This document shows, in pieces, positions 3,441 to 43,086 of a DNA stretch of 64,000 nucleotides. Position numbers and translations under genes: made by a program. Below the pieces are notes generated by a model. That model did no database searches. It saw only the letters and a list, made by a program, of their open reading frames with translations, and had not been told where the DNA came from. How positions within the stretch are numbered: position 1 is the stretch's first letter; each line of letters starts with the position of its first letter. Source of the DNA: Setoptus koraiensis (taxonomy: Eukaryota > Animalia > Arthropoda); contig CM106585.1 of assembly GCA_048013815.1 (NCBI GenBank), forward strand, positions 12,276,001 through 12,340,000, in the 5' to 3' direction.

Positions 3441-3441
<1 letters not shown>

Positions 3442-3501
<60 letters not shown>
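3442..3501. repeat. (GTTGCT)n hexanucleotide microsatellite
   Basis: About 10 perfect units. Confidence 0.9.
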
Positions 3502-3505
<4 letters not shown>

Positions 3506-4077
3506 TCGTTGTTGCTGCTGTTGGCGCCAATCTATCTATGACGACACACAAATGAGACCCAATTATCGCCGCTGCTGTGTTTATATGCTGCATGTAACAC
3601 CGCCAGGGTGTCGGGAGACGCACATTTTACTGCAGTTAAAGTGCTGCCGGTCGCAGCCTGGGTGCCGACAACAGCTCCAGAACAGCAACAGCAGCGCAAC
3701 AACAACAGCAACGCAACAACAACAGCAACGCAACAACAACGACAACAACGCGTCGCTTCGTCTACCGGAAGGAAGCGGCGTTCGGCCGGCCAATTTTGCA
3801 CACATTTCGTCGATGCAACATGGATCAATTAATGCGGCCCACAGTTGAAAGCGCAACATAGGCACCAGACGTTAGATGGTCGCTGCATGCTGGCCGGTCG
3901 CTCATCGCCGGCCGGACAGCCTGTCCGTCCGCTCATCGTCTGGCCGCTGCATCGGGCGGATACTGCGCGGATATTTGCACACACATTCGCCTTTGTGGTC
4001 GCTCGGGTGTCTACAGATCGTCGGTCTGCTGAGACGCTCGCTCAGATGTTGGCCGGCCGACAAGCGGCGCAGAGAGT

Positions 4078-12920: not shown

Positions 12921-13710
12921 GCTGGCCAACTAATGATAATTGTGGGCCCAGCAGAAAAGTGAGATTAAATGTCGAGATGCGCTACAGGTTTGCGAGTTAT
13001 AAATGTGATGAGTTGTGGGTTGTGTGTATAGTGAGTATTGCAAAAATAATTGTCGTTACAAGTTGCGTTAGCGGATATTGTCGGCGCCGGCGTGAGTTGC
13101 GCTGATATTTAAACACACTCGATTTGCATGCAAGCCACAACTACAAACACTAATAGTGATAAACAAACTAGCGATACTGTATTATTATTGGCCACTGGCT
13201 TCCAGAATACGGAGGCTCTTCCATTGAATGGCCGTGTGCCCGCCAACACAAATCTTTGCAACAGTTTGTTAGATGATGATGATGATTGGCGTCAACTGGA
13301 TCGCATGCCGCACTTTGCAATGCGAGGCTCGCATCGCAGGGCTCGCATTGTAGGGCTCACAAGTCGCATTTTGTGACTTGTGAGCATAGTCAACGCGAGT
13401 TTCTCGTAGCCCAACGAGCATCACAAATAATAACTTATTACAAATAAGTAATACAAGTAGCAAGGCGCCACCTAAAGCCACGCTACAGTGTGCGCCCGGA
13501 TCAATACGCAGCAGCGACATTGTGCGGCCGACACACGCAAACAGGCCCGCGCGCCGCGCGTTGTGCGGGCCTGTCGTCTAGTTTGCCCATTTGTCTGCTT
13601 GTGTCGCCACAATCTCGCAATTGTCATCACACTCTACTCATAACTGTCACACAACTACAACTACACGGTGCAACTGTGCTGACCAACTGTATCGACACTG
13701 CACTCCAGTC

Positions 13711-16169: not shown

Positions 16170-17795
16170 TCATTGTTTCTCTTTATCGACTTCTGACTTC
16201 TTCTTACTTCCTGAGACAATTCCGTCGATTCTCAGTAGCAAAACTGCAGTTTCAATAGCTGTCTTGTAGGCTTGCATTTTTACTGCAAGAGGCTCCCAGA
16301 CGTTAAGTACTTTCATATCGACAAGTTTACCTGTCTCACCATTAATACCGAAAGTCTTGTTATCGGCTGCTGTTGAGAAGTGTGTCGCTCTTAATGCAGT
16401 CAATTGGCGTACAGTGTCGCCACCACAGTTTTGAATTAATGTCCTGGGTATGACTTCTAAAGCATGAGCTGCAGCTCTATAGGGGCCTTGAGTAACATCG
16501 TTGATTTTGTCTGCTTTCTCTGACATTGCTTTTCCTACTGCCATCTCTACGGCTCCACCTCCGGGTACGACAAGAGGCTCCAGCATGATATTTCTCGCGA
16601 CACACATGGCATCTTGTAGATTACGTTCTACTTCATTCAAGATGTCCTTGCTTGGTCCACGCAAGACAACTGTGCAAGCTCGGGGATTTTTACATTTAAC
16701 TATGTAAGAGAAGTATTCATCACCTATCTTCTTAACTTCAAAAAGTCCAGCTCCAGTTCCTACATCTTCCTCGCGTAGCTCCTCAACTCGGTTCACTATA
16801 GTTGCTCCACAACAGCGCGCAACACGCATATTTTCTGTTTTCTTCAACCTTCTCAAACAAGTGATGTTGTTCTTCATCAGGTAATGTTGAGCTAGATCAG
16901 ACACTCCTTTCTCGGTGATCAATAGATCAGGTTTAAATTCAGCGATTTTGGCGCATAGGTTTTGAATGTATTCTTCTTCAATTTGAAGAACACGCGTGAA
17001 ATCTTCCTCTCTTGTGAGTTCTACATCGGTCTGGCTCTCTCCTTTTTTGTATTCTAATCCGGAGTCCAATAATATAATACGTGGGTTCTCAATGCGACGG
17101 CTCATCTTGGGGTGGACAACATCCTTGTTGAACATGACACCATCTAAGACTTCACTGTCTTCAATTGTTGCACCTGGTATTTTTTCAATACGAGCATAAC
17201 GCTTTATATCGATCTCTTTGCGACCATGTTCATCAATGTAAACCGATTTGGTTGCTTTGATGGCAAGACGGCAAGCAAAGTCTTCCCATTGTCCAAGAAA
17301 TTTTGTTCCAAGGCAACTTTGCACAACCTCGATTAATTTTGCCTCGTTGTTTATGTCTACCGGTATGGCAACTTGGTCTTTCAAAATCAATAGCATATCC
17401 TCTAAGGCGTGACGATAAGCTTTAATTACTAGAGTTGGGTGAAGGCCCTGTTCAAGAAATTGTTGTGACGATGATAGTAGCTCTCCCGCCAATATTATGA
17501 CAGATGTTGTTCCATCTCCGACCTCTTCATCTTGGGTTCGGCTAATTTCTATCATGGATTTAGCTGCTGGATGTTGTACAGTAATTTCGCGCAATATGGC
17601 ATTACCGTCGTTGGTCAGCACTATGCCTCCCATGGGATTCATCAACATCTTCAACATGGATCTTGGTCCAAGGCATGTCCTAACGACATCGGCCACATTT
17701 CTGGCAGCTCTGATACATTCGAGTTGAACTTTCTTTCCCTCTTCTCGTTTAGATTGCAAAACAAGAATTTGTGGTTGTCCCTGCATAGAAAACAT
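16170..17795 (-). CDS. CCT3: T-complex protein 1 subunit gamma (CCT3)
   Basis: LGPRSMLKMLMNPMGGIVLTNDGNAILREI, GDGTTSV and EYKKGESQTDVEL; 541 aa; intronless. Confidence 0.98.
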   Translation of the reverse strand: MFSMQGQPQILVLQSKREEGKKVQLECIRAARNVADVVRTCLGPRSMLKMLMNPMGGIVLTNDGNAILREITVQHPAAKSMIEISRTQDEEVGDGTTSVIILAGELLSSSQQFLEQGLHPTLVIKAYRHALEDMLLILKDQVAIPVDINNEAKLIEVVQSCLGTKFLGQWEDFACRLAIKATKSVYIDEHGRKEIDIKRYARIEKIPGATIEDSEVLDGVMFNKDVVHPKMSRRIENPRIILLDSGLEYKKGESQTDVELTREEDFTRVLQIEEEYIQNLCAKIAEFKPDLLITEKGVSDLAQHYLMKNNITCLRRLKKTENMRVARCCGATIVNRVEELREEDVGTGAGLFEVKKIGDEYFSYIVKCKNPRACTVVLRGPSKDILNEVERNLQDAMCVARNIMLEPLVVPGGGAVEMAVGKAMSEKADKINDVTQGPYRAAAHALEVIPRTLIQNCGGDTVRQLTALRATHFSTAADNKTFGINGETGKLVDMKVLNVWEPLAVKMQAYKTAIETAVLLLRIDGIVSGSKKKSEVDKEKQ

Positions 17796-21019: not shown

Positions 21020-22180
21020 TTGTTGTCATCTTGGTTGTACCGTTTCAATATGATGTTAAGAATACTGTCGAACACACTAGTTCATCAACGCTGCCTACTC
21101 AGACTATCTGACTGCGTCAGAAGTTCTTCAGCGCTCAAGCCAGCCAGTTGGATAAAATTCAGTCCCTATGGCCAATCACCAAAGAGACATATGCATCGAT
21201 ATCAGCAGGACACCATAAGGCTCATGTACTGGAGGGGGAGGTCGTTTGATGCAGTTAAATTCAAAGACAGACTGCAATCCGAGTGGCTGACATGGAACTA
21301 CAAGTCTGAATTGTTTGCATTCTCAAGACGCTTGAATGAAAACTTGAGCGAAACAACACTTCGTACAATATTCACATTCAGATGCTATTTAGACGAACTA
21401 GAGAAACAACAGCAAGATCTGGGAATGAAGGCTGCCGAGTTAGAGTATAAATGTAACACAGACCTGATAGATCGCGGTGCGGAACTTATGGAATCATTCA
21501 TAAAATCGTATCTCCGCTTTACATTTGATCGAATGCCTGAAGAAGGTATTGAAGAAGTGTGCAACTATTTGGTATCACAAGACGTCCTTCAAGATATTGC
21601 AAGATGGATAGGCTGTTATGATATAATATTGTGTGCCGAATTACCGCCTTCCGAAGAAAAGATGGCAAAATCAGTCAAGGCATTAGTCGCTGGCATTGAA
21701 CTGGATTATGGTTTGGACAAAGCGAGAAACTTTGTCATAGATTTTATATTAACTTATATACACGATAAAGATATTTTCGATGATATCTGGAAGATCCCTG
21801 ACCCGGTGGGCATAGTCAGAATGATTTCGAGAAACGACAATTTGGAATATGAGCCAAGAATAATGTTTCACACGGGTATTAATACCATTGAATCTTGTTA
21901 TGTTGTCGGAATTTATGTAAATAAGAAGCTTATCGGCTACGGACCAGGAGAAACGTTGAAAATAGCCGAGGTGTCCGCCGCTCTGGACTGCTTGCAGAGG
22001 TTGTGGGGCCTGAAGGAATCCAGAAAGCCAATGATATTTGGTGAACAAGCATACAAGATTGATTACAATAAGTATTCATCAAGGCACATGTCCATGAATG
22101 ACTGGACACTGTCCACTCTAGATACCGATATCCCTACTGGGCCTGATGTTGAAGCCAAAGAAAGTGTGAGCTGTAAATAA
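21020..22180 (+). CDS. MRPL44: Mitochondrial ribosomal protein L44 (RNase III-like plus dsRBD-like)
   Basis: WNYKSELFAFSRRLNENLS and YVVGIYVNKKLIGYGPGETLKIAE motifs; basic N-terminal presequence. Start is either ATG 21050 or ATG 20969 plus a 45-nt intron (GTAAG...TAG 20972-21016). Confidence 0.9.
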   Translation: MLSSWLYRFNMMLRILSNTLVHQRCLLRLSDCVRSSSALKPASWIKFSPYGQSPKRHMHRYQQDTIRLMYWRGRSFDAVKFKDRLQSEWLTWNYKSELFAFSRRLNENLSETTLRTIFTFRCYLDELEKQQQDLGMKAAELEYKCNTDLIDRGAELMESFIKSYLRFTFDRMPEEGIEEVCNYLVSQDVLQDIARWIGCYDIILCAELPPSEEKMAKSVKALVAGIELDYGLDKARNFVIDFILTYIHDKDIFDDIWKIPDPVGIVRMISRNDNLEYEPRIMFHTGINTIESCYVVGIYVNKKLIGYGPGETLKIAEVSAALDCLQRLWGLKESRKPMIFGEQAYKIDYNKYSSRHMSMNDWTLSTLDTDIPTGPDVEAKESVSCK

Positions 22181-22535: not shown

Positions 22536-22562
22536 GATGATAATAAATTCAATCAGATATGT

Positions 22563-22759
22563 TGTTGGTGTATACGCTCTGTTCGCAATCTGAGCAGGAT
22601 TCACTTTGTGCCAGCATTATACTTCACTGTGCCATTTTAATAACCAACTGTGCAACTATATATACTAATGCACAGTGATCATATATACTTACTCGAACTT
22701 ATACTTACATTCACATATATTCAATAAAAACTAGCTACACGCTACATAAAACCACAAAA
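22563..22759 (+). repeat. 5' LTR
   Basis: TGTTGGTG...ACCACAAAA; TATATA tracts; AATAAA at 22723. Confidence 0.97.
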
Positions 22760-22770
22760 GGTTAACAGCC
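22760..22770 (+). other. Primer-binding site GGTTAACAGCC
   Basis: Immediately 3' of the LTR. Its reverse complement GGCTGTTAACC is the anticodon arm of eukaryotic tRNA-Asn(GTT) as recalled. Confidence 0.75.
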
Positions 22771-22843
22771 AAAATTTTGCGATTGAATATATAACGAAAA
22801 AAGTACATAGTCCCCACGCTAACCACCAACATTGGACACCAAC

Positions 22844-25800
22844 ATGCAAAACATGCAATTGGCCGTCCCGTCTACGTCACATGGGACTAGACCGACTCAT
22901 CTTATCCGCCTGAATGGAGATAATTACTCAACCTGGCGAATGGTTATGAAGAAGGCTCTCAGCAACCGCAAGTTAGCCAGCGTTGTCTACGATCCCGAAG
23001 ATCCACTTCTCTCAGCTGAAGAAAGATCCGTCAAGGATTCTGAGGCATGGGAATTGCTTATCACGACCATGGACCAAGCTACGATGGACAAGGTCGTAGT
23101 CTGTGAGACGGCCAGAGAAATCTGGGACCGTCTCAAGAACATTTTTGAACAAGAGGGTGACGCTAGTCTCACCAACAATTACATTCAATTTTTCACCATT
23201 ACGATGCATGAATCTGAAGAGGTATCAGATTATATTTCCAAGCTTGAAAAATTGGTCGACAAAATAACTCAACAAGGCGAGACTCTCAGTGACCGGCTAC
23301 AACAAGCAAATCTACTGAGAGGCCTCACGTCAGACTATGATGTCTTTCGCAAAGTCTGGAGTGGCACTGCGGAAAAATCATACAAAATACTTAAAGACCG
23401 ATTGATCCTAGAAGGTACTTCGAACAAAAACCAACAATCGCGTAATAAATCAGGATCAGCATTCTACTCGCGAGAGCAAGATAGGTCGCATGGCAAAGAT
23501 AGACGCCAAGATAATGATAAACGGAAAGAAGTTGTTCGATGCAAATTCTGCAATTATAGAGGCCATACAATTGAGGACTGTCGCAGAAAGAAAGCTCAGC
23601 AAGACAACAACCCTCCACAAAAGACCAACAATTCTCCAAATGCACAAAAGAGCAACCATCAACAATCATCTAATCCAAAGCCTAACGAGAGAGCGCAATC
23701 CCGCTCTAATAACAACTTCGCATTCATGGCCAAAGTTGGCGACCAGTATGCAGGTCCAGATCTGTGGTACGCAGATTCAGGTGCGTCGAAACATATGTGC
23801 AACAACAAAGCTATGTTCAGCACAATAACATACTTCGACACACCGATACAAATCACAATAGGCGATGCAACAACAATTAAGGCGTATGGTTCCGGTCCAG
23901 TAGACATTGAAAGTACGAGTGGTGGAGCAATTTACTCAGTTACACTGACTAATGTTTACTATGTGCCGGAAATTGCGGAAAACTTAATATCCATTTCAGC
24001 TACCACAAGCAAAGGAAAGGTGCGCGTAATATTCGATGAGGACCATGTCCTATTCTTTAGTAAGACAGAACAGCCTGTCCTCATTGCCAGAGGTAACAAA
24101 CTTCCCTCAGGTCTATATCTAATGGAAGCATATGCTCAGAGCGACAGGGCCCTCTTCATGAAGTTCAACCGAACCATCGACGAATGGCACTCCAGTTTGG
24201 CCCATATAAACAAGGCTAGAATCAACCGAGCTATCACAGGAAATTTGGTAGAAAAAGCATCGATCTTAGATAAACGAGAACAAGGTTGCTGCGAGTGTCC
24301 ACAAGGCAAAGGCACCCAGGTTTCTCACCCGGACTCACACCGAGAACTGGCTAAAGAGGTTGGAAATGTGGCACATATGGATCTGGTGGGAAAGACTATT
24401 CCCAGCTTAGGTGGTAGCCAATTTTTTCTTTTAATAACCGATGAGGCTAGTAATTATCGGGTCATTTATCCCATCAAGACAAAGGATCAGGTCCGCGACA
24501 TGCTTCGAGACTATCTTACTATGGTCCGAAACCAAACCGGCAACAGCGTCAAACATGTCTTTTCGGATAACGGTTCGGAATTTGTAAATCAATGGACCAA
24601 AGAGCTATTTGCTGTCGAACAAGTGTTACACCATACGAGTGCACCCAGAACGCCAGAGCAGAATGGACGAGCAGAACGTTCAAACAGAACGGTTATAGAA
24701 GCTACACGCACCATGCTATTATCAAGTGGTCTTCCGAAGGAGTTGTGGGCAGAAGCTGCAGTAGCAGCGGTCTACATTTTGAATCGTATATCGAAGGTCA
24801 GGGACGGGGATACAACACCGTTTGAAATGTGGTTTAGACGCAAGCCTCATATTGCTCACATTCACGTCTTCGGTCAGGAGATACAACTAGTTAATAAGGA
24901 GCGCCCTGAATCAAAATGGGCCTCTAGAACGACTCCTGCCTACCTAGTAGGTTATACTGAGAGAGAAAATACATATAGGTGCTTTATTCCAGGCAAAAGA
25001 GCAATCGCTGTGACTAGCGATGTAATATTCGAAAAACATCCTCCTAAAACTACATGTCATTGTCAAACTACATCTTCCATCGGCCCAACACCGGACTTTC
25101 TTATCATACCGGACAATAAACCAAGAGAGAATACAGCAAATAATCCTATTACTGATGATCCTGGCACAACCGAGAACTCAGAACTCAACGTAGCTCCAAG
25201 TCCTACTGGCAATTTTCAATCAACACCCCTGGTAACAGCAGACAATCGTTCAAGTGACCTTGGAAGAAAGTTACCCACATCGGTGCTATCAGATTACTTT
25301 AATGAACTTCTGAAACATGATGGTCAACATTCCGCAGTCAATCTAGAAGAGAAGGACGAATCAAAGAGTATAACTAGGCCAGAGATCAGTTTACTTACTG
25401 ATCACGAGGCAAACAATACATCAGGGCAAAATAACAATGTTAATACCGATAATACTGGTGCATCTACCTCCAATCAACAAGGTCATCCAGGACGTCTGTC
25501 TAGACTCCTCGGATTGTCGTCAAGTGCTAGAATAAACAATGCGATTGTTACTCCAAGCAGACAGGCAGAGGTTGACCATCAACCATTCAAAGATGGACGC
25601 CTATCTGACCTCAAGCTCACAAAGGGAGGTATGTCAGGAGTATTCAGCCTCATCGCACACATCGAGCCTAAAACATATGATCAGGCGCTGAAGAGTAAGG
25701 AATGCGATAAGTGGCAAACAGCTATTGACGATGAACGGAAATCTTTGGAAGAGAACCAGACCTGGACTGTCGTGAAACTTCCCAAAGACGGCCACGCTCT

Positions 25801-28800
25801 CTCTTCTAGGTGGGTATTTACCAAAAAGATGTTATCGAATGGCGAAGTTGATCGCTATAAAGCACGCCTCGTAGTAAGAGGGTTCACGCAGCGACCTGGC
25901 GTGGACTTTCATGAAACTTTTGCTCCAGTGGTTCATCTCGAGTCGATTAGAATCTTGTTTGCTTTGATCACGCACTATCGGATGGAAATTCTACAATTTG
26001 ATATTGCCACCGCCTTCCTACAAGGAGACTTGGATGAAGATATTTACATTGCTCCACCAAAAGGGATCGACTGCCCAAATAATCACGTGCTCAAGCTCAA
26101 CAAATCAATCTATGGGCTGAAACAAGCTCCTAGATGCTGGAAGAGTAGCTTTGATCGCATCCTATCCAGACTCAACTTCGAGCCCATGATATCTGATCCC
26201 TGTCTTTTTGTAGGAAATATTCTGTCGCATAAGGTACTACTGGCTATCTATGTCGATGATGGTTTAGCTGCTTCTAAGTCACGAGAGGCGCTAGACCATC
26301 TCCTAAAACTACTGTCCACCGAGCTCAAAGTGCGCGAGGTCAAGTCAAATAAATTCGTTGGGATTGAAATCAAGAGATCGGATGATTATTCTGAATTAGT
26401 ACTGCATCAGCAAGCATACATTTATAAAATGCTAGATGAGTTTAATATGATAAGCTGCAAGCCAGATAAGACACCCATTACGGACACAAAGGCATTGCAA
26501 ACACAAGATGCAAATGATAAAGTCACTACTGCACCATATCGCGAGCTTATAGGTAGCCTATTATACGCTGCCTGCCTTACCAGGCCAGATATAAGCTTTT
26601 CCGTAAGTTTCTTATCACGGTTTAGTGAAGCTCCACTCGATAAACACTGGGCTGCTGCCAAGCGCATCTTAAGATACCTCAAAGGCACCGCCCAAATGGG
26701 GATAAAATTCACACACTCAACCCAACTCAACCTGGAGTGCTTTACCGATGCTGATTGGGGAGGTGACTTGACAAGTAGAAAGTCGACCTCTGGAATGATC
26801 TGCTTTCTATCTAACGGTCCAATCAGTTTTAAGTCGAAAAAACAAACAGTGGTGACACAGTCGACTACGGAGGCTGAATATCTTGCCGCCAATCTAGGAG
26901 TAAGAGAAATACTCGGTACAAGAAACATTCTAGATGAACTAGATATACAACCAAACACTACATCACTTAACCTAGACAATCAATCAGCAATACGACTAAT
27001 CAAGAATAGTGAATACCATAATGACACCAAGCATATAAGTATAAAAGCACATTTCATACGAGACCATTATCAACAAGGAATGTTCTCACTTCAATACGTC
27101 TCATCATCCGACCAGAAGGCGGATATATTAACAAAAGCATTAGCACCCAAGACACATACTGCCATGTTAGGCAAACTAAACATGACCCTTATTGCAGTGG
27201 TATGCATCATTACAACACTAATTGCACCAATGGATGGACATGTGTTTGCTGTAGATGATCCTATCATCTGGATGAAGGAGAACGTACACTACATCAGTGG
27301 CCAAATTGACGAACATATAAGAGTTGAACTCATTGATCAATGTCAATATGTATTCAAGAACCTCACCGGATTGAACAATTTGGACAATAAACTAATGCAA
27401 GCCTGCTCGCAAAGATTTAAGCTGGATGTTATAGAAAACTGGAAAAAGATCGCCAGCGACAATACACGAATTGCCAGAGATGGTGGCCTCTCGTTGGCCA
27501 CTGTTGTGGCAGTTACCAGTATATTTACTAGTATTGCAGCAACAATCAAAGTAAAAGACATGGAAAGGGAGGAACGTATTCGCAATGAATTGGTGACGCA
27601 GATGAACGACAATGTCGCCACTATCCAACGTAAGTTGCTACTCTCCAATGAGCGCATATCGACAAAATTAGACAAACTAGAGGACAGAATTGAAAAATTA
27701 GGTCATATAGTTGCAGCGCAACCCCAACTGCAAGACGCCTTGCATCAGGCACTCATAGCTATCCACGAATATAAACTACGCCTACTCCAACTGAAAAGGC
27801 AATTGACAATAAACAGTGAAGTGCCAACTATCCTATTAGAGATTTTCAATCTTACGCACCTCACCAACGAGGCTACCCTGCGCCACTCTAAGATACACAA
27901 GATAGTTATGCGAGACAATCATCTACATATCCAATTAACCTTGCCGAAGATAGATCATCGCGTTACAATCTACAAAGCAAAACCTTTCTTTTACACAGCA
28001 ATCCATGACGACAAGGTATGTACTTTCAGGTATCGCGGACCTGAGTACATGATGCATAATAAAAGTTCAGGTTGTATGCATCCAGTCTCAAATGATGAGA
28101 TTATTAACAGCGCAATTGTTGGTGAAGACTGCACTCATCCACGGTCTTTAAACATAAAAGATTTATTTGTGCCAGAGGACTGTCAAAAGATAACGAAAGA
28201 AACCTTCATGAAGCAGAAAGTCCAAATTAAGCCATATGGAGTTCAGGTCTTTGTCAACTGCCAAGGACATAATATCACTATAGGTAATCTTAACCAAAGG
28301 TGCCCTAATCATGTCTTTACAGTGAATGAAGGGGTAAAATTCATGGTTGGAGATACGCGCTATCAATTCGAGAAGTCCAACACCGACGTAGCACTGAATT
28401 TGCATGACGTATCCGCCCGCATTAATCTCCAGTTAGGCACGTCAAAGCCTATCTTCACTGCACTGGACACAGAAGACATCCAAGACCTTGAAAAAGAGGG
28501 TGCCCAATTAAGGAAAGCTCAACTGAAGCTAAAATTACTAACCAACTCTACAAGCTCTAGTTCCTTCTTTAACTTTGATTTAGGTAGTTTATACAACATA
28601 GGTAGCACCACACACTGGTTGATCACGGTTATTGGATCATACTTGGGTATGCTTGTAGGAGTGTATATCCTATACTTGTTGATCAAGGATAAGTGGAATG
28701 TAAAGCTATCGACAACCATTTTGGCAATAATTGCAATCCTACCACTTGCCATGGCAACGGATCAACAATCACAATTCCTCACTGTCACCCAAACGGCGAC

Positions 28801-29368
28801 CGAGTCGACCCGACAAATTCATCAGCTACAAAATGCAATGCTGGAAAACAAGTGTAACTTGTGGTCGCTCAATGAGAATACTGACTGGTGGCAAAGAGGT
28901 GCAGGGTATTACCCAGTCAGCATAGCCTGTGCGCTGGCCCGCTATAAAATCGAGTGTCCATGCTCTGTTGAAACAGAAATAATTCCCGTCCTACCTCGAT
29001 ATGAAATTCGCTTAATGAGGAACTTCACAGTTCCTCCTACCTGTGCACGCAATCCGACTCAAGAGTTTTCATCCCAGCTTAGACTCTATGAAACTCTAGT
29101 TGAATATCTGTGCATCTCAGCTAGACAGGAGCCAGATGACGCATGGCCAAAGCGAGCTCATGGACAATTGGTAGCATCTGGATGTATGGTCGCAAAAATG
29201 GCATATAATTGCCACTGCCCTGGCAACCATAAAAACATCTACAATGATGTGATCGCCACTACTCTAGAAGCCTTAAGACTTAGAGGCCCAAAACCGGCCA
29301 CCTGCAAAGGGCCGGAACCAGCTCCTGAAAAGTCAAATTCTGTAGTTGATCACTTGTTCACTGCTTGA
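22844..29368 (+). CDS. Single Gag-Pol-Env polyprotein (about 2174 aa from the first ATG)
   Basis: Copia gag; CCHC knuckle CKFCNYRGHTIEDC (23540-23581); protease WYADSGAS (D at 23774); HHCC pre-integrase; integrase D(24380)..D(24566)-x35-E(24674); RT YVDD (26249); RNase H TDADWGG...ADILTKAL (26744-27142); then an env-like region with no stop. Confidence 0.97.
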   Translation: MQNMQLAVPSTSHGTRPTHLIRLNGDNYSTWRMVMKKALSNRKLASVVYDPEDPLLSAEERSVKDSEAWELLITTMDQATMDKVVVCETAREIWDRLKNIFEQEGDASLTNNYIQFFTITMHESEEVSDYISKLEKLVDKITQQGETLSDRLQQANLLRGLTSDYDVFRKVWSGTAEKSYKILKDRLILEGTSNKNQQSRNKSGSAFYSREQDRSHGKDRRQDNDKRKEVVRCKFCNYRGHTIEDCRRKKAQQDNNPPQKTNNSPNAQKSNHQQSSNPKPNERAQSRSNNNFAFMAKVGDQYAGPDLWYADSGASKHMCNNKAMFSTITYFDTPIQITIGDATTIKAYGSGPVDIESTSGGAIYSVTLTNVYYVPEIAENLISISATTSKGKVRVIFDEDHVLFFSKTEQPVLIARGNKLPSGLYLMEAYAQSDRALFMKFNRTIDEWHSSLAHINKARINRAITGNLVEKASILDKREQGCCECPQGKGTQVSHPDSHRELAKEVGNVAHMDLVGKTIPSLGGSQFFLLITDEASNYRVIYPIKTKDQVRDMLRDYLTMVRNQTGNSVKHVFSDNGSEFVNQWTKELFAVEQVLHHTSAPRTPEQNGRAERSNRTVIEATRTMLLSSGLPKELWAEAAVAAVYILNRISKVRDGDTTPFEMWFRRKPHIAHIHVFGQEIQLVNKERPESKWASRTTPAYLVGYTERENTYRCFIPGKRAIAVTSDVIFEKHPPKTTCHCQTTSSIGPTPDFLIIPDNKPRENTANNPITDDPGTTENSELNVAPSPTGNFQSTPLVTADNRSSDLGRKLPTSVLSDYFNELLKHDGQHSAVNLEEKDESKSITRPEISLLTDHEANNTSGQNNNVNTDNTGASTSNQQGHPGRLSRLLGLSSSARINNAIVTPSRQAEVDHQPFKDGRLSDLKLTKGGMSGVFSLIAHIEPKTYDQALKSKECDKWQTAIDDERKSLEENQTWTVVKLPKDGHALSSRWVFTKKMLSNGEVDRYKARLVVRGFTQRPGVDFHETFAPVVHLESIRILFALITHYRMEILQFDIATAFLQGDLDEDIYIAPPKGIDCPNNHVLKLNKSIYGLKQAPRCWKSSFDRILSRLNFEPMISDPCLFVGNILSHKVLLAIYVDDGLAASKSREALDHLLKLLSTELKVREVKSNKFVGIEIKRSDDYSELVLHQQAYIYKMLDEFNMISCKPDKTPITDTKALQTQDANDKVTTAPYRELIGSLLYAACLTRPDISFSVSFLSRFSEAPLDKHWAAAKRILRYLKGTAQMGIKFTHSTQLNLECFTDADWGGDLTSRKSTSGMICFLSNGPISFKSKKQTVVTQSTTEAEYLAANLGVREILGTRNILDELDIQPNTTSLNLDNQSAIRLIKNSEYHNDTKHISIKAHFIRDHYQQGMFSLQYVSSSDQKADILTKALAPKTHTAMLGKLNMTLIAVVCIITTLIAPMDGHVFAVDDPIIWMKENVHYISGQIDEHIRVELIDQCQYVFKNLTGLNNLDNKLMQACSQRFKLDVIENWKKIASDNTRIARDGGLSLATVVAVTSIFTSIAATIKVKDMEREERIRNELVTQMNDNVATIQRKLLLSNERISTKLDKLEDRIEKLGHIVAAQPQLQDALHQALIAIHEYKLRLLQLKRQLTINSEVPTILLEIFNLTHLTNEATLRHSKIHKIVMRDNHLHIQLTLPKIDHRVTIYKAKPFFYTAIHDDKVCTFRYRGPEYMMHNKSSGCMHPVSNDEIINSAIVGEDCTHPRSLNIKDLFVPEDCQKITKETFMKQKVQIKPYGVQVFVNCQGHNITIGNLNQRCPNHVFTVNEGVKFMVGDTRYQFEKSNTDVALNLHDVSARINLQLGTSKPIFTALDTEDIQDLEKEGAQLRKAQLKLKLLTNSTSSSSFFNFDLGSLYNIGSTTHWLITVIGSYLGMLVGVYILYLLIKDKWNVKLSTTILAIIAILPLAMATDQQSQFLTVTQTATESTRQIHQLQNAMLENKCNLWSLNENTDWWQRGAGYYPVSIACALARYKIECPCSVETEIIPVLPRYEIRLMRNFTVPPTCARNPTQEFSSQLRLYETLVEYLCISARQEPDDAWPKRAHGQLVASGCMVAKMAYNCHCPGNHKNIYNDVIATTLEALRLRGPKPATCKGPEPAPEKSNSVVDHLFTA
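27182..29368 (+). CDS. Env-like class I fusion glycoprotein region plus post-TM Cys-repeat domain
   Basis: Signal MTLIAVVCIITTLIAPMDG; RIAR|DGGLSLATVVAVTSIFTSIAATI (27467-27547); heptad repeats; 8 ectodomain Cys; sequons NLT, NLT, NKS, NIT, NST; TM 28616-28684; second hydrophobic segment 28706-28756. Confidence 0.85.
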   Translation: MTLIAVVCIITTLIAPMDGHVFAVDDPIIWMKENVHYISGQIDEHIRVELIDQCQYVFKNLTGLNNLDNKLMQACSQRFKLDVIENWKKIASDNTRIARDGGLSLATVVAVTSIFTSIAATIKVKDMEREERIRNELVTQMNDNVATIQRKLLLSNERISTKLDKLEDRIEKLGHIVAAQPQLQDALHQALIAIHEYKLRLLQLKRQLTINSEVPTILLEIFNLTHLTNEATLRHSKIHKIVMRDNHLHIQLTLPKIDHRVTIYKAKPFFYTAIHDDKVCTFRYRGPEYMMHNKSSGCMHPVSNDEIINSAIVGEDCTHPRSLNIKDLFVPEDCQKITKETFMKQKVQIKPYGVQVFVNCQGHNITIGNLNQRCPNHVFTVNEGVKFMVGDTRYQFEKSNTDVALNLHDVSARINLQLGTSKPIFTALDTEDIQDLEKEGAQLRKAQLKLKLLTNSTSSSSFFNFDLGSLYNIGSTTHWLITVIGSYLGMLVGVYILYLLIKDKWNVKLSTTILAIIAILPLAMATDQQSQFLTVTQTATESTRQIHQLQNAMLENKCNLWSLNENTDWWQRGAGYYPVSIACALARYKIECPCSVETEIIPVLPRYEIRLMRNFTVPPTCARNPTQEFSSQLRLYETLVEYLCISARQEPDDAWPKRAHGQLVASGCMVAKMAYNCHCPGNHKNIYNDVIATTLEALRLRGPKPATCKGPEPAPEKSNSVVDHLFTA

Positions 29369-29377
29369 CCGTTCTCA

Positions 29378-29390
29378 GAGCGAGGGGGAG
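29378..29390 (+). other. Polypurine tract GAGCGAGGGGGAG
   Basis: Directly abuts the 3' LTR. Confidence 0.9.
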
Positions 29391-29587
29391 TGTTGGTGTA
29401 TACGCTCTGTTCGCAATCTGAGCAGGATTCACTTTGTGCCAGCATTATACTTCACTGTGCCATTTTAATAACCAACTGTGCAACTATATATACTAATGCA
29501 CAGTGATCATATATACTTACTTGAACTTATACTTACATTCACATATATTCAATAAAAACTAGCTACACGCTACATAAAACCACAAAA
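29391..29587 (+). repeat. 3' LTR
   Basis: Identical to the 5' LTR except one C>T at a CpG (ACTCGAAC vs ACTTGAAC). Confidence 0.97.
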
Positions 29588-29941
29588 TATGTTGCCTGAA
29601 TATTGATGTTACATTCAATACAAGATATTCATTGACAATATACCGATCGATAGAGCTGTGTGGTGAAAGTGCTATGGGAGCACGTTGCTGATCAATCTAA
29701 ATTCAATTCTCAAGTCGGATCATGCGGTGAGCGCCCGGTAAAATGTGCGCTGTGCCACTCCCCCTGCTCGCAGTGCCCGTTGGACAGTTGTTGCTGCGAG
29801 CATAAGGGCTGTTTTTCCCTCCTTTCGGTCCCTGTTGTGAGAGCGAACGCTCTTTCGTTGCTAGATGGACATGCACCTGAACTCTTTGTGAGAACAAACT
29901 GGAACGGCCGCATCAACAACAACAACAGCATCAACAACAAC

Positions 29942-30739
29942 TTCAGGAATTGTACTTGAGGAAAAACAAGGTGGAAAGTATAGCCGAGATTGCCCACTTA
30001 CAAAATCTGCCCAATCTTAAAAATCTATGGTTCGATGAGAACCCTTGCGTGGCTAACACTTACAATTATAGAAAAGTTGTTCTAAGGGCTCTACCAAATC
30101 TAAAAGTTCTTGACAATGTACCTGTAACTGGCGAAGAATTAAGAGAAATCGAAGAACTGGGTGATGAAATCTATGAAGAGATTTACAGACCAGACGCTTC
30201 AGTTGTTCGTGGTGGTGATGCTAGCGCACAAGAAATCGATTCTTATGATGATGGTAGATATGAAAATGATACAACCAATTACGACCAGGATAATAACATT
30301 AATGCCATTTCACACCAATCCAATGATTCCGGTAGTGATAGCAGTCAATCTAGCTCCACTATACCAACAACAAACAACTATGTTGCACAGACAAACTTTT
30401 GTCACAACACTAATAATAACTCATCTTCGGCTACATTGCCCAATGATATTTCTAGATTGAATATATCAACAACACCCAGTAATAAGAGCCAGTCTAGAAA
30501 TGTAACTAGTCATTCCAATAACAATCTAAGCGTTTCAAGCATTTGCCAGCAAGGTTGGTCACAACAAAATGTCAACAATAACCAAACAACAAATAGCAAC
30601 AATTCTGCCAACAGCATCCATCTTCCAAAAGGAGGCAAAAATCGCAATGCCAATATTTTGTCAGCCGTTTTATGTTTGATCAAAGAATTAGACTATGTTA
30701 GTTGCGAAGTAGTTCAAACAGCCTTACATTGCCGAATTG
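29942..30739 (+). pseudogene. 5'-deleted duplicate of CFAP410/C21orf2 exon 2 (copy of 33580-34377)
   Basis: 798 bp near-identical (one substitution seen, KVL vs KIL); lacks the start exon; stop codon replaced by GPCR sequence. Confidence 0.8.
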
Positions 30740-32256: not shown

Positions 32257-33250
32257 GTTACATTCAATACAAGATATTCATTGACAATATACCGATCGAT
32301 AGAGCTGTGTGGTGAAAGTGCTATGGGAGCACGTTGCTGATCAATCTAAATTCAATTCTCAAGTCGGATCATGCGGTGAGCGCCCGGTAAAATGTGCGCT
32401 GTGCCACTCCCCCTGCTCGCAGTGCCCGTTGGACAGTTGTTGCTGCGAGCATAAGGGCTGTTTTTCCCTCCCTTCGGTCCCTGTTGTGAGAGCGAACGCT
32501 CTTTCGTTGCTAGATGGACATGCACCTGAACTCTTTGTGAGAACAAACTGGAACGGCCGCATCAACAACAACAACAGCATCAACAACAACGGCATCGCCA
32601 CCACAAGTAACAACGGCGGCAACAACAGTTACTATATACGGCTAGATTTGCAAGGTGCTTCTCTTGGAATACCGTACTGTAGCTTAGTAGGACACAACAA
32701 CAAACAACAACAAGCAACAACAGCATCGAATAAGAAGCAACACACACCTTGGACGGCCCAACTGACCTATAAATAGCCAGACGGCAAATAAAAGTGCATT
32801 CGTGTCTACGATTGGATCGGGCGCATAACTGTTGTTGTTTTCATCATCATTTATATCATCATTATCATCAGGCGCTCATTAGAATATCCAGTTCTAATTT
32901 AGATGCAAACAGGCAAGCAACAACAATTAGCATAATTAATAGTGGCCGTAGTCGCTGCACAATAATGTAGAGCGGCCATCAATCAAGCCGACTGACCAAA
33001 CCAAATATTGGAGCAGATATTCGGAACTGCCGCCACTGCTACTAGCGCTATACTCATTTAGTATTACTCAAATGTTTAGAAGAATTGATTGATTTTAGGA
33101 AATTCACACCAATGCACTTCTAATACCCACTCACACCAAAGACTGTTTCTTTTTTCACGAAATTACTAACCACTTTCAAATAAGATATTTATACAATACA
33201 CACAACAGAGTTTTAGCGTTGTCATCAGCAAACCCAAAACTGCCATCACC

Positions 33251-34397
33251 ATGTCCGTATTAAGTGAATCGTTTGTGCTGGCCAAAACAAGATCGCAAGA
33301 TCTTAAGTCTGTGAGGAGACTCAACTGCTGGGGTAAGTACAACAACAATTTGTAAAAGTTATAGCAAACAAAACAGTAAAAATAAAACATATTGATCATG
33401 TCCTATCTCGTCCGCTTCATTGATGCGCATTTCAATCAACGATTAAATCAATCTGATTTGAACAACAGGCAACGAACTAAAGGATGTCACTCTATTGAGG
33501 AGAATGCCCAACGTTGAAGTGCTCTGTATGTCGGTCAACGAACTGACAACCCTGGAGGATTTTAGTTACTGCCCAAAACTTCAGGAATTGTACTTGAGGA
33601 AAAACAAGGTGGAAAGTATAGCCGAGATTGCCCACTTACAAAATCTGCCCAATCTTAAAAATCTATGGTTCGATGAGAACCCTTGCGTGGCTAACACTTA
33701 CAATTATAGAAAAGTTGTTCTAAGGGCTCTACCAAATCTAAAAATTCTTGACAATGTACCTGTAACTGGCGAAGAATTAAGAGAAATCGAAGAACTGGGT
33801 GATGAAATCTATGAAGAGATTTACAGACCAGACGCTTCAGTTGTTCGTGGTGGTGATGCTAGCGCACAAGAAATCGATTCTTATGATGATGGTAGATATG
33901 AAAATGATACAACCAATTACGACCAGGATAATAACATTAATGCCATTTCACACCAATCCAATGATTCCGGTAGTGATAGCAGTCAATCTAGCTCCACTAT
34001 ACCAACAACAAACAACTATGTTGCACAGACAAACTTTTGTCACAACACTAATAATAACTCATCTTCGGCTACATTGCCCAATGATATTTCTAGATTGAAT
34101 ATATCAACAACACCCAGTAATAAGAGCCAGTCTAGAAATGTAACTAGTCATTCCAATAACAATCTAAGCGTTTCAAGCATTTGCCAGCAAGGTTGGTCAC
34201 AACAAAATGTCAACAATAACCAAACAACAAATAGCAACAATTCTGCCAACAGCATCCATCTTCCAAAAGGAGGCAAAAATCGCAATGCCAATATTTTGTC
34301 AGCCGTTTTATGTTTGATCAAAGAATTAGACTATGTTAGTTGCGAAGTAGTTCAAACAGCCTTACATTGCCGAATTGAAGAAACTATGAACAGTTGA
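33251..34397 (+). CDS. CFAP410: Cilia/flagella-associated LRR protein CFAP410 (C21orf2); join(33251..33332,33469..34397)
   Basis: MSVLSESFVLAKTRSQDLKSVRRLNCWG|NELKDV...LQELYLRKNKV...LWFDENPC; C-terminal NILSAVLCLIKELD motif; GTAAGT...CAG intron keeps frame. Confidence 0.9.
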
Positions 34398-37298: not shown

Positions 37299-39887
37299 AT
37301 GGTGCCCGCTTGCTCCATTGCCCGCGTAATAACGGCCATATCGCTGGCCTGTGCATGCATTGTTACGACGGGCACTAGCTCAAGCAGCGACCCTGGGGCC
37401 CAGTCGTCGAGTCGTCACATTTTAAGCGCAGTAAATCACGCTGCAACAACCAATGCAACAACTAATGCAACAAGTGGTCGCCTTGCTGCAACAATGATAT
37501 CGGCCCACAACCAAACTACAATGGCCAACGTGACCATTCGAACCATCAAGCGGACCACAAAAACACCGTCAACAGTTTCGGAGTCAGTTCCGGGACAGAC
37601 TCACAAGCAAGCCGGCCCATACATGAGCCGACAATCGATTGCGGCAGCTCTCACAGCGCCAACAAACGCCACCGCCAATGAAACCAAAGAACAACGCCAG
37701 ACCGTGCACAGGGCCTCACAATACGCGCACCACAGGCAACAGATTAAACAGCACCGTGCAACCACCGCCAGACCTCATTTGCGCCCATTTGAACATTTGT
37801 TTCCACTTGATCATCTGCCTCTGATGCCCAACACTCCGCCGGTGTTTATGGTCTCGCGCGAGCTAATTGTCGCGAGGGACGATCCAATCGGCACCAGGGT
37901 GACAACAATCAAAACCAGAGACGATGATCATGATCGCATAGACTACTCGCTACAAGAGTCTTTAGTTCAGGATGGATCGAAATATTTTCACATCAATCGC
38001 AGGACAGGTGAACTAATTTTGAGTGGTAAATTTCCACAGCCAGAACACAATAGCGACAACATTGATTACTATATCACAGTAGTGGCCGACGATGGCCATT
38101 TCCCTGCCAAAATGGATTTCCTTGTGCGCGTTGTCAACAACGACAATTCTACTAGCCAACAGGATCAACTATCTCACACACAATCCATTCCATTGATGCC
38201 ACCGCCCAAGATTATCGGCAATATGACACGAGAATATGTCTCTAGACTGCCCGGTTATGATTCAACACAACCACATAGTATACCCTCGTATGTTAATCCA
38301 CCCATGACACTGCCATGGAATTTCAGGCATCCTCATGACAGTACAAGCTTGCTTACCCGAGACGATGTCAAGGAAGAACCTTTGTCAAAATCCGATTCAA
38401 TGGACACCAACATTCCAGGCCCCATTCCCTCACAATTCAGAGATAGCAATGAGGTTGATGTCAATCCAAGCCGGAGCGAAATTATAGTACCCAATCAAAT
38501 GACGAACGTGCTGTCAGATAGCTCGTCTCGTGATGGAGCCTCATTTCCTGAAGCTGGCCAACAAACTACTCATTCGAATATTAATTCTAATTTATTCGGA
38601 ATCATATTGCTTTCGTCGGTTATTACCTGCCTAATTGTATCAGCTTTTAGAAAGATGAAACAATTAGAAGACAAAGAAAATCATGATCCCAACGTAAAAT
38701 GTGCAGTCATGATCGCGGACGAGACACCAGAGAGGATCATTTCCCCTGTAAGCTCTTGGGAATATGACTGTATTGAGACGGACGAATATTCTGAGAGATC
38801 CAGCCAAGACTTGCAACCCGCTGTAATCAATCCTACTAGAGAAGCAACTCCATCTCACAAGTTTTCTAGCTTAAGAACTGAGAAAGTACCCTCGGCACAA
38901 GATGATTTGCTTTTGGAAGGACTGAGTCAAGAAGCGGAAAAAGAAAGTAAGAGATGGGATTTTCCTCGCCATAAATTGATTTTCAAAGATATGCTAGGTG
39001 AAGGTGAATTCGGCCAAGTATGGAGATGTTTAATTGAAGAGGAAGAAGGCACTAAGAGGCAAGTTGCTGTTAAAACATTAAAAAGAGGATTGGGAAAGAA
39101 CGAACGAGAGAATCTCCTGGCAGAGATTGAAATAATGAAACTACTGGATAGACATCCTTATGTCGTTCAGATGCTAGGCTGCTGTATGGAAGCGAACGAA
39201 CCCATATATCTGATAATGGAACTTATTCAAAAAGGGAAATTGAGTTCTTATTTGAGAAAAAGCCGCCAGGACAGATTGTACAACAACTTGCACGGTACAA
39301 GTGGTAGGTTGACAGCAAAAGACTTGATCAAATTCTCATACCATATCGCAAAAGGGATGGAGTATGTTTCATCTCAGGGTATCATACATAGAGACTTGGC
39401 TGCTAGGAATATTTTGGTTACATCAAATAAGATTTGTAAAGTAGCCGATTTTGGCTTTGCGAGAAAGGTCGATGTCGAATGTATCTATGAGAGAAAATCG
39501 GACGACAGAGTCCCCGTCCGCTGGATGGCTCCAGAATCATTGGATAATAGGTACACGACTAAATCAGACGTGTACTCTTTTGGTGTTCTAATGTGGGAAA
39601 TAGTAACCCTGGGGGCGTCGCCCTTTGAAGACCTATCAGCATGCGAAGTCATGCAGAAAGTGCGTCAGGGGGAGAGATTGCCAAGGCCGGACCATTGTAA
39701 GAGGGAATTGTACAATATTATGACCAAATGTTGGATGCATGATCCAGAAGATAGACCAAGTTTCAGCATGTTAGCACTGATATTAAACAAACTTCTAATT
39801 AGTGAGAATGAGTACATTGAGCTGGAACAATATCCTGATCACAGTTATTACAATATACTGACTGATCTTTCTGGAGAGAAGCTGTAG
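37299..39887 (+). CDS. Cad96Ca: Cadherin-domain receptor tyrosine kinase Cad96Ca/Stitcher (RET-like)
   Basis: Signal peptide; single cadherin repeat (PPVF...DDPIGTRV...DDDHD.IDYS); [21 protein letters not shown]; kinase [28 protein letters not shown]; C-terminal [12 protein letters not shown]; intronless. Confidence 0.92.
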
Positions 39888-39975
39888 TAATCTGGAGATA
39901 CGAAAAAAAAAAAAAATAAATAAAAAGCCTGTAAGTTATAACTAATAAATGATGATGATTTTTTTTAATATGCAA

Positions 39976-40572
39976 CTATGGGTTGAATTGTGCTACTATT
40001 TCCTCGACCGAATCTATTCGGAGTCCGTTTTGCACTGCAGCAGCAGTCTGACGACTAATCTGATTTATTAGTTGTACTTCGTCTCCAGATATTGGTTCGT
40101 AATTCACTCCCCTTGTATCTAAATTTTTATTCAATGTCGCCTGCAATTGTTGCGTGCCATCAGTACCTTGACTAGCTTCGTAAGTATTATTGAAGCCACT
40201 TCTTGATACTAGGGTTGATTTCAGCACCAATGGTGTTTTTATTTGATTCAATCTCGATTGATAGGCTTTCTGTCGATCCACAATTTCACCCTGTTGTATT
40301 AACATGGATTCGCCGGGTGCAACGTCTATCACATTGGATGCCATTTTTTGTAGAATCCTTTCCAGGGCTGTTTGCTCTGCTTTGTTGCCATTGACAATTG
40401 AACCATAGGAGGGTAGATCTTGATGAGATACGGCTGATGTTGATGAAGAATATATGTCATCGCACAAATTTTGTTGTCCTTCACAAACATCATCTAATAT
40501 ACGGGAACGTTCCTCACGGTCGTCATCACTTTTGTCGCTGTCCTTACAGCAACAACTCTTAAGATTTCCCAT
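39976..40572 (-). CDS. LAMTOR1: Ragulator subunit LAMTOR1
   Basis: MGNLKSCCCK myristoylation/palmitoylation start, EERSRIL, LQKMASNVIDV, C-terminal EEIVAQF. Confidence 0.85.
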   Translation of the reverse strand: MGNLKSCCCKDSDKSDDDREERSRILDDVCEGQQNLCDDIYSSSTSAVSHQDLPSYGSIVNGNKAEQTALERILQKMASNVIDVAPGESMLIQQGEIVDRQKAYQSRLNQIKTPLVLKSTLVSRSGFNNTYEASQGTDGTQQLQATLNKNLDTRGVNYEPISGDEVQLINQISRQTAAAVQNGLRIDSVEEIVAQFNP

Positions 40573-42865: not shown

Positions 42866-43086
42866 TTAATTTTTCAAGATCAACTATTTTTATTTAAATC
42901 TATATCTTGGTAATTTATATTATTACATTAAGACAAACTGTGATAGTTAATCATGTGTAGATCATGGTATATATGTATTTAATCGGCGATTCCGGCTGCT
43001 GCCTTACAATTAAATTGGCTTCATCGATAACTGCAGAACAAAACTCTAACTCTGTTATATGACCATTTCATGACAATTTCGTCAAA

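Follow-up and report, generated by a model that had tools for sequence, protein, structure and literature searches.

A complete, young and uninterrupted Ty1/copia-type LTR retroelement occupies positions 22563-29587 of the 64-kb stretch of an eriophyoid mite genome analysed here (the window), as shown by its anatomy and its intact frame. The env part of this element (27182-29368, 728 codons open) is likely a homologue of the F-type class I fusion glycoproteins found in paramyxo- and pneumoviruses, in arthropod mononegaviruses, as baculovirus F and as errantivirus env. Cleavage, trimerisation and fusion are inferred for the mite protein, for which there are no functional or expression data. In the literature searched we found no report of an F-type envelope gene in an animal Ty1/copia-type retroelement, and a large metazoan Copia survey (PMC11889832) does not mention envelopes.

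Anatomy of the copia-type element

The element is delimited by two 197-bp LTRs that differ at a single base and by a 5-bp target duplication (Table 1), and its insertion was in all likelihood recent. Gag, pol and env form one ORF of 2178 codons with 0 internal stops (ORF list and translation of 22832-29368), for which a chance origin is ruled out. A motif scan recovered all of the catalytic motif patterns, and the Pfam matches place Pol in the order PR-IN-RT-RNase H (Pol_BBD, then rve and SH3, then RVT_2). An errantivirus identity for the carrier was considered and rejected, as IN lies 5' of RT and the RT is of the RVT_2 type, not in the gypsy-type order PR-RT-RNase H-IN. No additional LTR copies were detected within the 64-kb window, where the element is single-copy, and reading of the sequence after 22759 revealed no obvious tRNA 3'-end complement that could serve as primer-binding site, the window being without a tRNA gene for comparison. 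Exact look-up returned no identical database record for the polyprotein, nor for the TCP-1 protein of the window. The encoded TCP-1 gamma shares 81-83% identity with proteins of eriophyoid mites.

Table 1. Features of the retroelement, with positions in the window and the evidence for each call (aa, residues of the polyprotein unless env aa is given).
Feature	Position	Strand	Evidence
Target-site duplication, 5' copy (TATGT)	22558-22562	+	identical 5-mer beside each LTR
5' LTR, 197 bp	22563-22759	+	direct repeat of 29391-29587 with one mismatch
Single gag-pol-env reading frame, first ATG to stop	22844-29368	+	ORF list and translation; open frame starts at 22832
Gag: copia-type gag domain and one CCHC knuckle	23009-23581	+	Pfam Retrotran_gag_2, E 2.9e-25, aa 60-201; CCHC pattern aa 237-250
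Protease region with D-S-G motif	23765-24016	+	Pfam Pol_BBD, E 2.3e-24, aa 312-395; motif aa 315-318
Integrase: zinc-binding part, catalytic core and SH3-like domain, upstream of RT	24110-25042	+	Pfam gag_pre-integrs, rve and SH3_retrovirus, aa 427-737
Reverse transcriptase, copia type	25754-26482	+	Pfam RVT_2, E 1e-63, aa 975-1217; Y-x-D-D motif aa 1140-1143
RNase H region, D-A-D-W motif to conserved end motif	26747-27136	+	motif positions; weak Pfam RVT_3 match aa 1315-1374
Env signal-like hydrophobic segment, Met first, env aa 1-24	27182-27253	+	hydropathy peak 2.36; helix aa 2-13 in model
F2-like part with two conserved Cys, ending in R-I-A-R (27467-27478)	27239-27478	+	column shares; model pLDDT 91-96 over aa 21-90
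Fusion-peptide-like hydrophobic segment, env aa 101-124	27482-27553	+	hydropathy; hydrophobicity conserved in relatives
HR1 / HRA-like helix, env aa 145-207	27614-27802	+	model; heptad occupancy; stretch matched to F0 chains in PDB sequences
Beta-rich head with six conserved Cys, env aa 237-395	27890-28366	+	model strands, pLDDT about 90-97; Cys in 98-100% of rows
HR2 / HRB-like helix, env aa 430-456	28469-28549	+	model; heptad occupancy 0.71
Membrane anchor (TM1), env aa 478-503	28613-28690	+	hydropathy 2.01; tail-less relatives end nearby
Second hydrophobic segment after a basic linker, env aa 506-529, signal-like, ending A-M-A	28697-28768	+	hydropathy 2.26; kept in tail-bearing rows
Tail domain, mainly helical and rich in Cys (ten, plus one sequon), env aa 530-728	28769-29365	+	homology to relatives; Cys shares; models
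Polypurine tract directly 5' of the 3' LTR	29378-29390	+	read from sequence
3' LTR, 197 bp	29391-29587	+	pairs with 5' LTR 22563-22759
Target-site duplication, 3' copy (TATGT)	29588-29592	+	identical 5-mer beside each LTR

Profile and fold evidence for an F-type envelope

A preliminary description, made from the sequence alone, had listed as env features a hydrophobic signal after RNase H, an F2-like part of about 80 aa with 2 Cys, a minimal furin-type site (RIAR, 27467-27478) followed by a hydrophobic fusion-peptide-like stretch, a long HR1, a 6-Cys beta-rich region, an HR2-like stretch, a TM and five sequons. All of these held, each at the place given for it and in one frame (translation of 22832-29368). 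The signal-like segment (aa 1-24) begins 15 residues past the RNase H end motif, and the two F2-like Cys, at aa 54 and aa 75, are kept in 98-100% of relatives in the alignment columns, with eight env Cys conserved in at least 98% of rows. At the cleavage motif (aa 96-99) the column shares in relatives are 98% for the P1 Arg, 78% for the P4 Arg and 73% for K/R at P2; the P2 residue of the window is Ala, so that its own site is only a minimal R-x-x-R. The hydrophobic character of the following aa 101-124 extends to 51 aligned relatives (median Kyte-Doolittle 1.85), HR1 is a helix of 63 residues in the model with a hydrophobic occupancy of 0.72 at heptad a/d positions, and model helices, strands and conserved Cys likewise bear out the beta-rich region and HR2. 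Five N-glycosylation sequons are at aa 60, 223, 293, 364 and 455. The signal and anchor (aa 478-503) calls rest on hydropathy and not on a dedicated signal or topology predictor.

The claim that this order follows the class I layout of paramyxovirus F, baculovirus F and errantivirus env is now supported by fold and profile, beyond the layout alone. A profile of 61 relatives searched against PDB sequences ranked paramyxo- and pneumovirus F0 chains first, the best match being Langya henipavirus F (E 7.7e-07) with cleavage site, fusion peptide and HRA in register. The structure check was run with an AlphaFold2 monomer model of env (pLDDT 80.3) and Foldseek, and the top 50 PDB matches were without exception paramyxo/pneumovirus F proteins (E 3.5e-09 to 1e-06; about 500 aligned columns; probability 1.00). 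A best match to a host coiled-coil membrane protein, the outcome that would have refuted the assignment, did not occur. Arthropod mononegaviruses, paramyxoviruses and baculoviruses supplied the best fold matches in BFVD, again F-type glycoproteins. No curated Pfam family was detected for the env protein of the window, neither Fusion_gly (PF00523) nor Baculo_F (PF12259); Fusion_gly matched faintly in 2 of the 61 relatives, and the Pfam families listed for env relatives do not include Baculo_F.

Against solved F structures the env model reaches only low TM-scores (0.17-0.39). Such values are to be expected when an elongated protein with two stable conformations is modelled as a monomer, but they leave the fold match dependent on local 3Di/sequence alignment. 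For the fusion-peptide stretch the confidence of the model is low (pLDDT < 50 over env aa 99-154), and sequence identity to paramyxovirus/pneumovirus F is about 10-15%. Since lispi/arli-like viruses, paramyxoviruses and baculoviruses score in overlapping E-value ranges, none of them can be singled out as the donor family, and the earlier statement that the donor family is unknown still stands.

Among known systems, paramyxovirus/pneumovirus F0 (Fusion_gly PF00523) gives the best profile and fold matches and shares the order F2, cleavage site, fusion peptide, HRA, head, HRB and TM. The mite env differs from it in its distant sequence, which falls below the Pfam model, in its own Cys pattern and in being encoded in DNA by a retroelement as opposed to an RNA virus. 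Baculovirus F (Ld130 type) and the glycoproteins of arthropod mononegaviruses (lispi/arli-like), whose hosts are arthropods too, are among the best BFVD folds (E 6e-11 to 3e-08), although for baculovirus F there is no Pfam Baculo_F match to env and the E-values overlap those of paramyxovirus F. The F-type ENV of errantiviruses (Ty3/gypsy, invertebrates; founding case Drosophila gypsy env; Chary & Hayashi, eLife 2026, PMC13524379) is likewise an F-like class I fusogen placed 3' of pol in an LTR retroelement, and has in common with the mite env a signal peptide, a conserved furin-type site, a fusion peptide, head and stalk, and a TM. Here, however, the carrier is Ty1/copia (IN before RT, RVT_2), env is fused in frame to pol and an extra domain follows the anchor. 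The top BFVD matches include no insect errantivirus env. The cited survey, which covers metazoan F-type and gB-type ENV, classed all elements as Ty3/gypsy and did not treat copia carriers. Plant Ty1/copia elements of the Sirevirus type (SIRE1 group; cited in PMC13524379) have the same backbone with an extra ORF after pol that encodes a predicted membrane protein; homology of that env-like ORF to a viral fusogen is, to our knowledge, not demonstrated, whereas the element described here is from a mite and its homology to F is supported by fold and profile.

Relatives, exchange of env and the post-anchor domain

The env family is visible only in an exhaustive search of representative proteins, which yielded 288 representative relatives at E <= 1e-3; a word-indexed protein search returned a single match with env alone and a single match with the 61-sequence profile. 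The named relatives are all from acariform mites. In 51 of the 59 matches that cover the env N-terminus, upstream residues belong to the same ORF, and pol and env share one ORF in no fewer than 20 relatives of copia type and 9 of gypsy type, the copia fusions being independent representative proteins from different data sets. The gypsy-type polyproteins of acariform mites carry distant members of the env family (20-25% identity). In a neighbour-joining tree of the env core, which has very long branches and no support values, the tail-bearing copia envs cluster, and copia- and gypsy-borne envs interleave; we used the tree solely for these two observations. The occurrence of one F-type fusogen family in both contexts means that env has been transferred between the two LTR superfamilies, copia and gypsy.

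Two rival readings of the env were weighed. In the first, env is a domesticated host fusogen gene, or else the locus is an assembly chimera of a copia element and an unrelated env. Insects do have domesticated F-type genes, and nothing specific supports either version here: the LTRs and the target duplication enclose env, which is in frame with pol and stands 22 nt before the 3' LTR, and no fewer than 20 independent representative proteins show this copia pol-env fusion too. The host-gene version was rejected on the position of env between the LTRs and the chimera version on the recurrence of the fusion among relatives, so that this reading is all but excluded. In the second, env is a functionless, decaying passenger of an element that moves within cells like an ordinary copia. 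The weak, minimal cleavage motif of this copy speaks for it, as do the presence of one copy only in the window and a related contig in which the pol region is split into four called genes (at least three interruptions) beside an open env. Against it, 728 codons are open while the LTRs differ by one base, the Cys, the cleavage site and the fold are strongly conserved by column across the 288 representative relatives, and the model confidence, which is alignment-derived, is high. We regard the passenger reading as very unlikely, and retain that of an F-type env belonging to the element.

The preliminary description had ended the env unit at 28684, and this part failed, since homology with relatives passes the anchor and reaches about env aa 695-708, near the stop at 29368. 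A second correction is that env is not a separate gene but in frame with pol, without an intervening stop. The description had missed that the carrier is copia-type and not an errantivirus, that env is fused in frame to pol and that a further conserved domain follows the anchor. Both hydrophobic segments, joined by a linker with at least two K/R, are conserved in all 14 tail-bearing rows, while in tail-less relatives the ORF ends a median of 35 aa past the membrane anchor. The tail domain matched no Pfam family, no PDB sequence and no PDB fold (best E 1.1), and we consider this segment of ~200 aa an orphan domain without recognisable relatives outside the env family, whose role is a guess. By topology it would sit on the luminal or outer side, where it could be an additional ectodomain anchored through a hairpin or, if freed by signal peptidase, a separate second product; small residues at -3/-1 of the putative peptidase site are poorly conserved by column. 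We propose that the tail acts as an accessory or binding partner of the fusogen. Both its topology and its role are inferred, not shown.

Proposed expression and use of the envelope

By analogy with F proteins, the hydrophobic segment at the pol-env junction would bring the env part into the ER, and a furin-like convertase would cleave after R-I-A-R to give two pieces, one F2-like (about 76-80 aa) and one F1-like, the latter with the fusion peptide as its new N-terminus. The protein would trimerise and, once triggered, HR1 and HR2 would fold back into a helix bundle and merge the membranes, upon which Gag particles of the element could exit one cell and enter another. These steps, cell-to-cell transfer included, are inferred and not shown, as is the expression route: ER entry may follow co-translational release from a Gag-Pol-Env polyprotein or translation of a spliced subgenomic mRNA from the ATG at 27182, and the sequence does not discriminate between the two.

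In the polyprotein route, the full-length RNA would give one Gag-Pol-Env polyprotein in which the junction segment is an internal signal, with signal peptidase separating Pol from Env and the second hydrophobic segment serving likewise for the tail. Some RNA viruses process structural polyproteins by signal peptidase at internal signals. The absence of a stop between pol and env in the window speaks for this route, as does in-frame fusion being the rule in relatives only 20-30% identical, in copia and gypsy contexts alike. Moreover, 14 of 32 fused relatives lack a junction Met with a hydrophobic run, which makes an env start there impossible, and the succession of TM1, basic linker and second signal-like segment resembles multi-glycoprotein precursors. 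Against it, Gag, Pol and Env would be equimolar, which is unusual for retroelements, the Met of the window stands exactly at the signal start, and there are no peptide or transcript data. On balance we see this route as having roughly as much for it as against it.

In the splicing route, env would be translated from a spliced subgenomic mRNA starting at ATG 27182, as in errantiviruses and retroviruses, with the continuity of the frame tolerated or incidental. Retroviruses and errantiviruses express env from spliced subgenomic RNA, and Drosophila copia splices too, for a gag-only mRNA. In favour of this route, Met is the first signal residue in the window and in 18 of the 32 fused relatives, and an AG lies 12 nt 5' of ATG 27182 (read from the sequence, without splice prediction). 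However, it leaves the fusion of the pol and env frames across deep divergence unexplained, the junction start codon is absent in 14 of 32 relatives, and unspliced RNA would still give a Pol-Env fusion in need of processing. We lean slightly against splicing.

A bolder reading, which remains no more than possible, is that acariform mites harbour a Ty1/copia lineage that turned enveloped and retrovirus-like independently of retroviruses and errantiviruses, whose whole proteome is a single polyprotein cut at internal signals, and in which a Cys-rich glycoprotein of novel fold, secreted or hairpin-anchored, partners the fusogen.

Envelope capture is the step that converts a retrotransposon into a retrovirus-like agent, and in animals it is documented for Ty3/gypsy and BEL/Pao elements. 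The presence of the F-type fusogen family in Ty1/copia as well (at least 20 representative polyproteins) means that a third major LTR superfamily took the same route. Eriophyoid mites are plant pests with very small genomes, and such a host adds interest for studies of horizontal transfer. How the envelope is expressed and used in such elements becomes a testable question in view of the domain behind the anchor and of the constant fusion of Gag, Pol and Env in one frame.

Anatomy and surroundings of the element

The element contains one open frame of 2178 codons (22832-29368, plus strand, from the ORF list), its LTRs being bordered at both outer ends by an identical TATGT 5-mer and the 3' LTR being preceded directly by a polypurine run. 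Pfam analysis placed the domains in the order copia-type gag, protease-associated barrel, integrase, SH3-like domain of integrase and RVT_2, the last matched at E 1e-63, and pattern searches recovered a CCHC knuckle, the protease D-S-G, the integrase zinc site, the RT Y-x-D-D and the RNase H D-A-D-W. No gene of this copy carries a stop or frameshift. Because the integrase lies upstream of an RT of the RVT_2 family, we assign the element to the Ty1/copia type; the same two characters rule out an errantivirus. Further LTR copies were not found elsewhere within the 64-kb window. A primer-binding site was not identified: no obvious complement to a tRNA 3' end follows the 5' LTR, and the window holds no tRNA gene for comparison.

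The ORFs around the element code for mL44, TCP-1 gamma, a tyrosine kinase and a CPAP-like protein, most of them in one exon. The best matches of TCP-1 gamma share 81-83% identity with it, the named ones being from the eriophyoid mites Aceria tosichella and Fragariocoptes setiger. This places the window in an eriophyoid mite and excludes a human source. TCP-1 gamma (16170-17795, minus strand), mL44 (21020-22180, plus) and the tyrosine kinase (37299-39887, plus) each occupy a single long ORF, in keeping with the genomes of eriophyoid mites, reportedly intron-poor and compact. The mL44 ORF ends ~380 bp upstream of the element. Immediately beyond the element's 3' target duplication is a block of 1.1 kb (29608-30739), repeated 2.6 kb farther downstream with 99.7% identity and split there (32257-32590 and 33574-34377) by ~983 nt without GT..AG ends; both copies overlap ORFs matching LRR and 7tm_2 (secretin-type receptor), and the pair may stem from a recent duplication of part of a gene or from misassembly. 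Farther along, direct repeats of 683 nt (42389-43071 and 46651-47329; 98.5% identical, 4.26 kb apart) flank a minus-strand ORF of 794 aa (43087-45471) without a Pfam match, inside which three tandem units of ~432 nt (144 codons; 44080-45355) share 76-84% identity. A 138-nt repeat pair lies at 39944-40081 and 46517-46654. The 683-nt repeats may delimit a further element or mark a segmental duplication. Triplet-periodic, low-complexity CAA/CAG-rich repeats (717-864, 3373-3550 and 12035-12839), partly within the ORF at 11538-12929 (minus), probably encode Gln/Asn-rich stretches.

Profile and fold of the env part

The preliminary description, made from sequence alone, had proposed the layout of a class I viral fusion protein for 27182-28684. 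Every feature it listed was found where it had been placed in the translation of 22832-29368. Two corrections apply: homology with relatives extends the conserved unit beyond 28684 to the stop at 29368, and env is not a separate gene, as it continues pol in frame with no stop between.

Features of the element and of its env part (residues numbered from the Met at 27182)
Feature	Env residues	Window positions	Details
LTR pair		22563-22759 and 29391-29587	197-bp direct repeat; 1 base differs
N-terminal hydrophobic segment	1-24
F2-like stretch			about 80 aa; Cys at 54 and 75
R-I-A-R	96-99	27467-27478
Hydrophobic segment behind R-I-A-R	101-124
Helix-prone heptad region			long; after the 101-124 segment
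Beta-rich stretch			six Cys; between the two heptad helices
Second heptad helix			after the beta-rich stretch
Hydrophobic anchor	478-503
Five sequons	60, 223, 293, 364, 455
Basic linker			between anchor and second hydrophobic segment
Second hydrophobic segment	506-529		ends A-M-A
Tail domain			about 200 aa; ten Cys, one sequon

The env part matched no curated Pfam family, and an exhaustive HMMER search returned 288 representative relatives at E <= 1e-3. When a profile of 61 relatives was compared with PDB sequences, paramyxo- and pneumovirus F0 chains made up nearly all of the best 60 matches (top match Langya henipavirus F, E 7.7e-07), with cleavage site, fusion peptide and HRA aligned in register. 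An AlphaFold2 monomer model built on the same alignment (mean pLDDT 80.3) shows a beta-rich region between two helices (residues 145-207 and 430-456), the fusion-peptide stretch being poorly modelled. With this model, the top 50 Foldseek matches in the PDB were F proteins only (E 3.5e-09 to 1e-06, probability 1.00, ~500 aligned columns), post-fusion forms ranking first. TM-scores to these structures lay between 0.17 and 0.39, a low range that is to be expected when an elongated protein is modelled as a monomer. In BFVD the best matches were arthropod mononegavirus glycoproteins (Sanxia water strider virus 4 at 6.4e-11; arli/lispi-like viruses also among the best), paramyxovirus F and Ld130-type baculovirus F. 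Since the E-values of these candidates overlap, no donor family can be named, and the preliminary statement that the donor is unknown still holds. Among the Pfam families listed for the 61 relatives, Fusion_gly was matched faintly by two and Baculo_F was absent.

Conservation was counted on the 61-row alignment. The P1 Arg of the cleavage site is kept in 98% of rows and the P4 Arg in 78%; P2 is K/R in 73% and Ala in the window's copy, leaving a minimal site. In each of the 51 rows with sequence there, the segment after the site is hydrophobic (median 1.85), and 98-100% of rows retain Cys at residues 54, 75, 280, 298, 317, 334, 360 and 374.

Carriers of related envs and the tail

Among the best 150 hits, env shares an ORF with a copia-type pol in 20 and a gypsy-type pol in 9. 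Nine hits have Pfam support: seven copia-type (P0002, P0007, P0049, P0054, P0092, P0104 and P0075), one gypsy-type (P0144) and P0064, with an integrase C-terminal domain only. Six of the seven are full gag-pol-env ORFs (1880-2187 aa) whose envs are 20-31% identical to the window's; the seventh, P0002, is without gag, and its env is the closest (61%). Every named relative is from an acariform mite, either Halotydeus destructor or Leptotrombidium deliense, and those with a typable pol are gypsy-type; of the copia-type relatives, most derive from read-archive or metagenome assemblies that lack annotation, where the contigs are about as long as the element. Many of the copia-type gag-pol-env relatives (P0049-P0147) lie on contigs of 6-7.7 kb, roughly one element long, which could be transcripts or collapsed multi-copy repeats. 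On one contig with a related element (L001), pol is broken over four called genes (at least three interruptions) and env is open. In a distance tree, rough only, tail-bearing copia envs cluster and the remaining copia- and gypsy-borne envs interleave.

Homology to relatives spans the linker, second hydrophobic segment and tail domain. The tail was found in 25 of the best 150 hits; pol accompanies it in four, each time of the copia type. All 14 tail-bearing rows retain both hydrophobic segments and two or more K/R in the linker. Tail-less relatives resemble viral F proteins in having only a short stretch past the anchor (median 35 aa). The tail is predicted to be mostly helical (pLDDT ~70 modelled alone, higher within the full env model), and nothing matching it was found among Pfam families, PDB sequences or PDB folds. 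A luminal or outer location is inferred from topology rules and the even Cys number, and the tail would reach it through a hairpin anchor or signal-peptidase release; small residues at the proposed peptidase site show only limited conservation by column.

Expression and proposed role of env

Two routes to env expression remain possible. Env may be released co-translationally from a polyprotein, as supported by the conserved in-frame pol-env fusion (upstream residues share the ORF in 51 of the 59 hits that cover the env N-terminus, and 8 begin at env) and by the 14/32 clearly fused relatives that have no Met at the junction. Alternatively, env may be made from a subgenomic RNA, for which the Met at 27182 speaks, a Met preceding a hydrophobic run being found at the junction in only 18 of those 32; env RNAs are spliced in retroviruses and errantiviruses, which provides precedent.

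F-type ENV has been described in elements across metazoans, all classified as Ty3/gypsy (PMC13524379), whereas the carrier here is Ty1/copia. A large survey of metazoan Copia elements nowhere mentions envelopes (PMC11889832), and we came across no animal copia element with a viral-type fusogen in the literature searched, most subscription journals being outside its scope. The best-supported reading, which we consider likely, is that of a retroelement of the copia type carrying an F-type class I fusogen; anatomy, fold and conservation are shown, and cleavage, fusion and transfer are inferred. In this reading a furin-like cut would activate the fusogen and refolding of HR1/HR2 would drive its action, whereby the element's particles may gain a route between cells.
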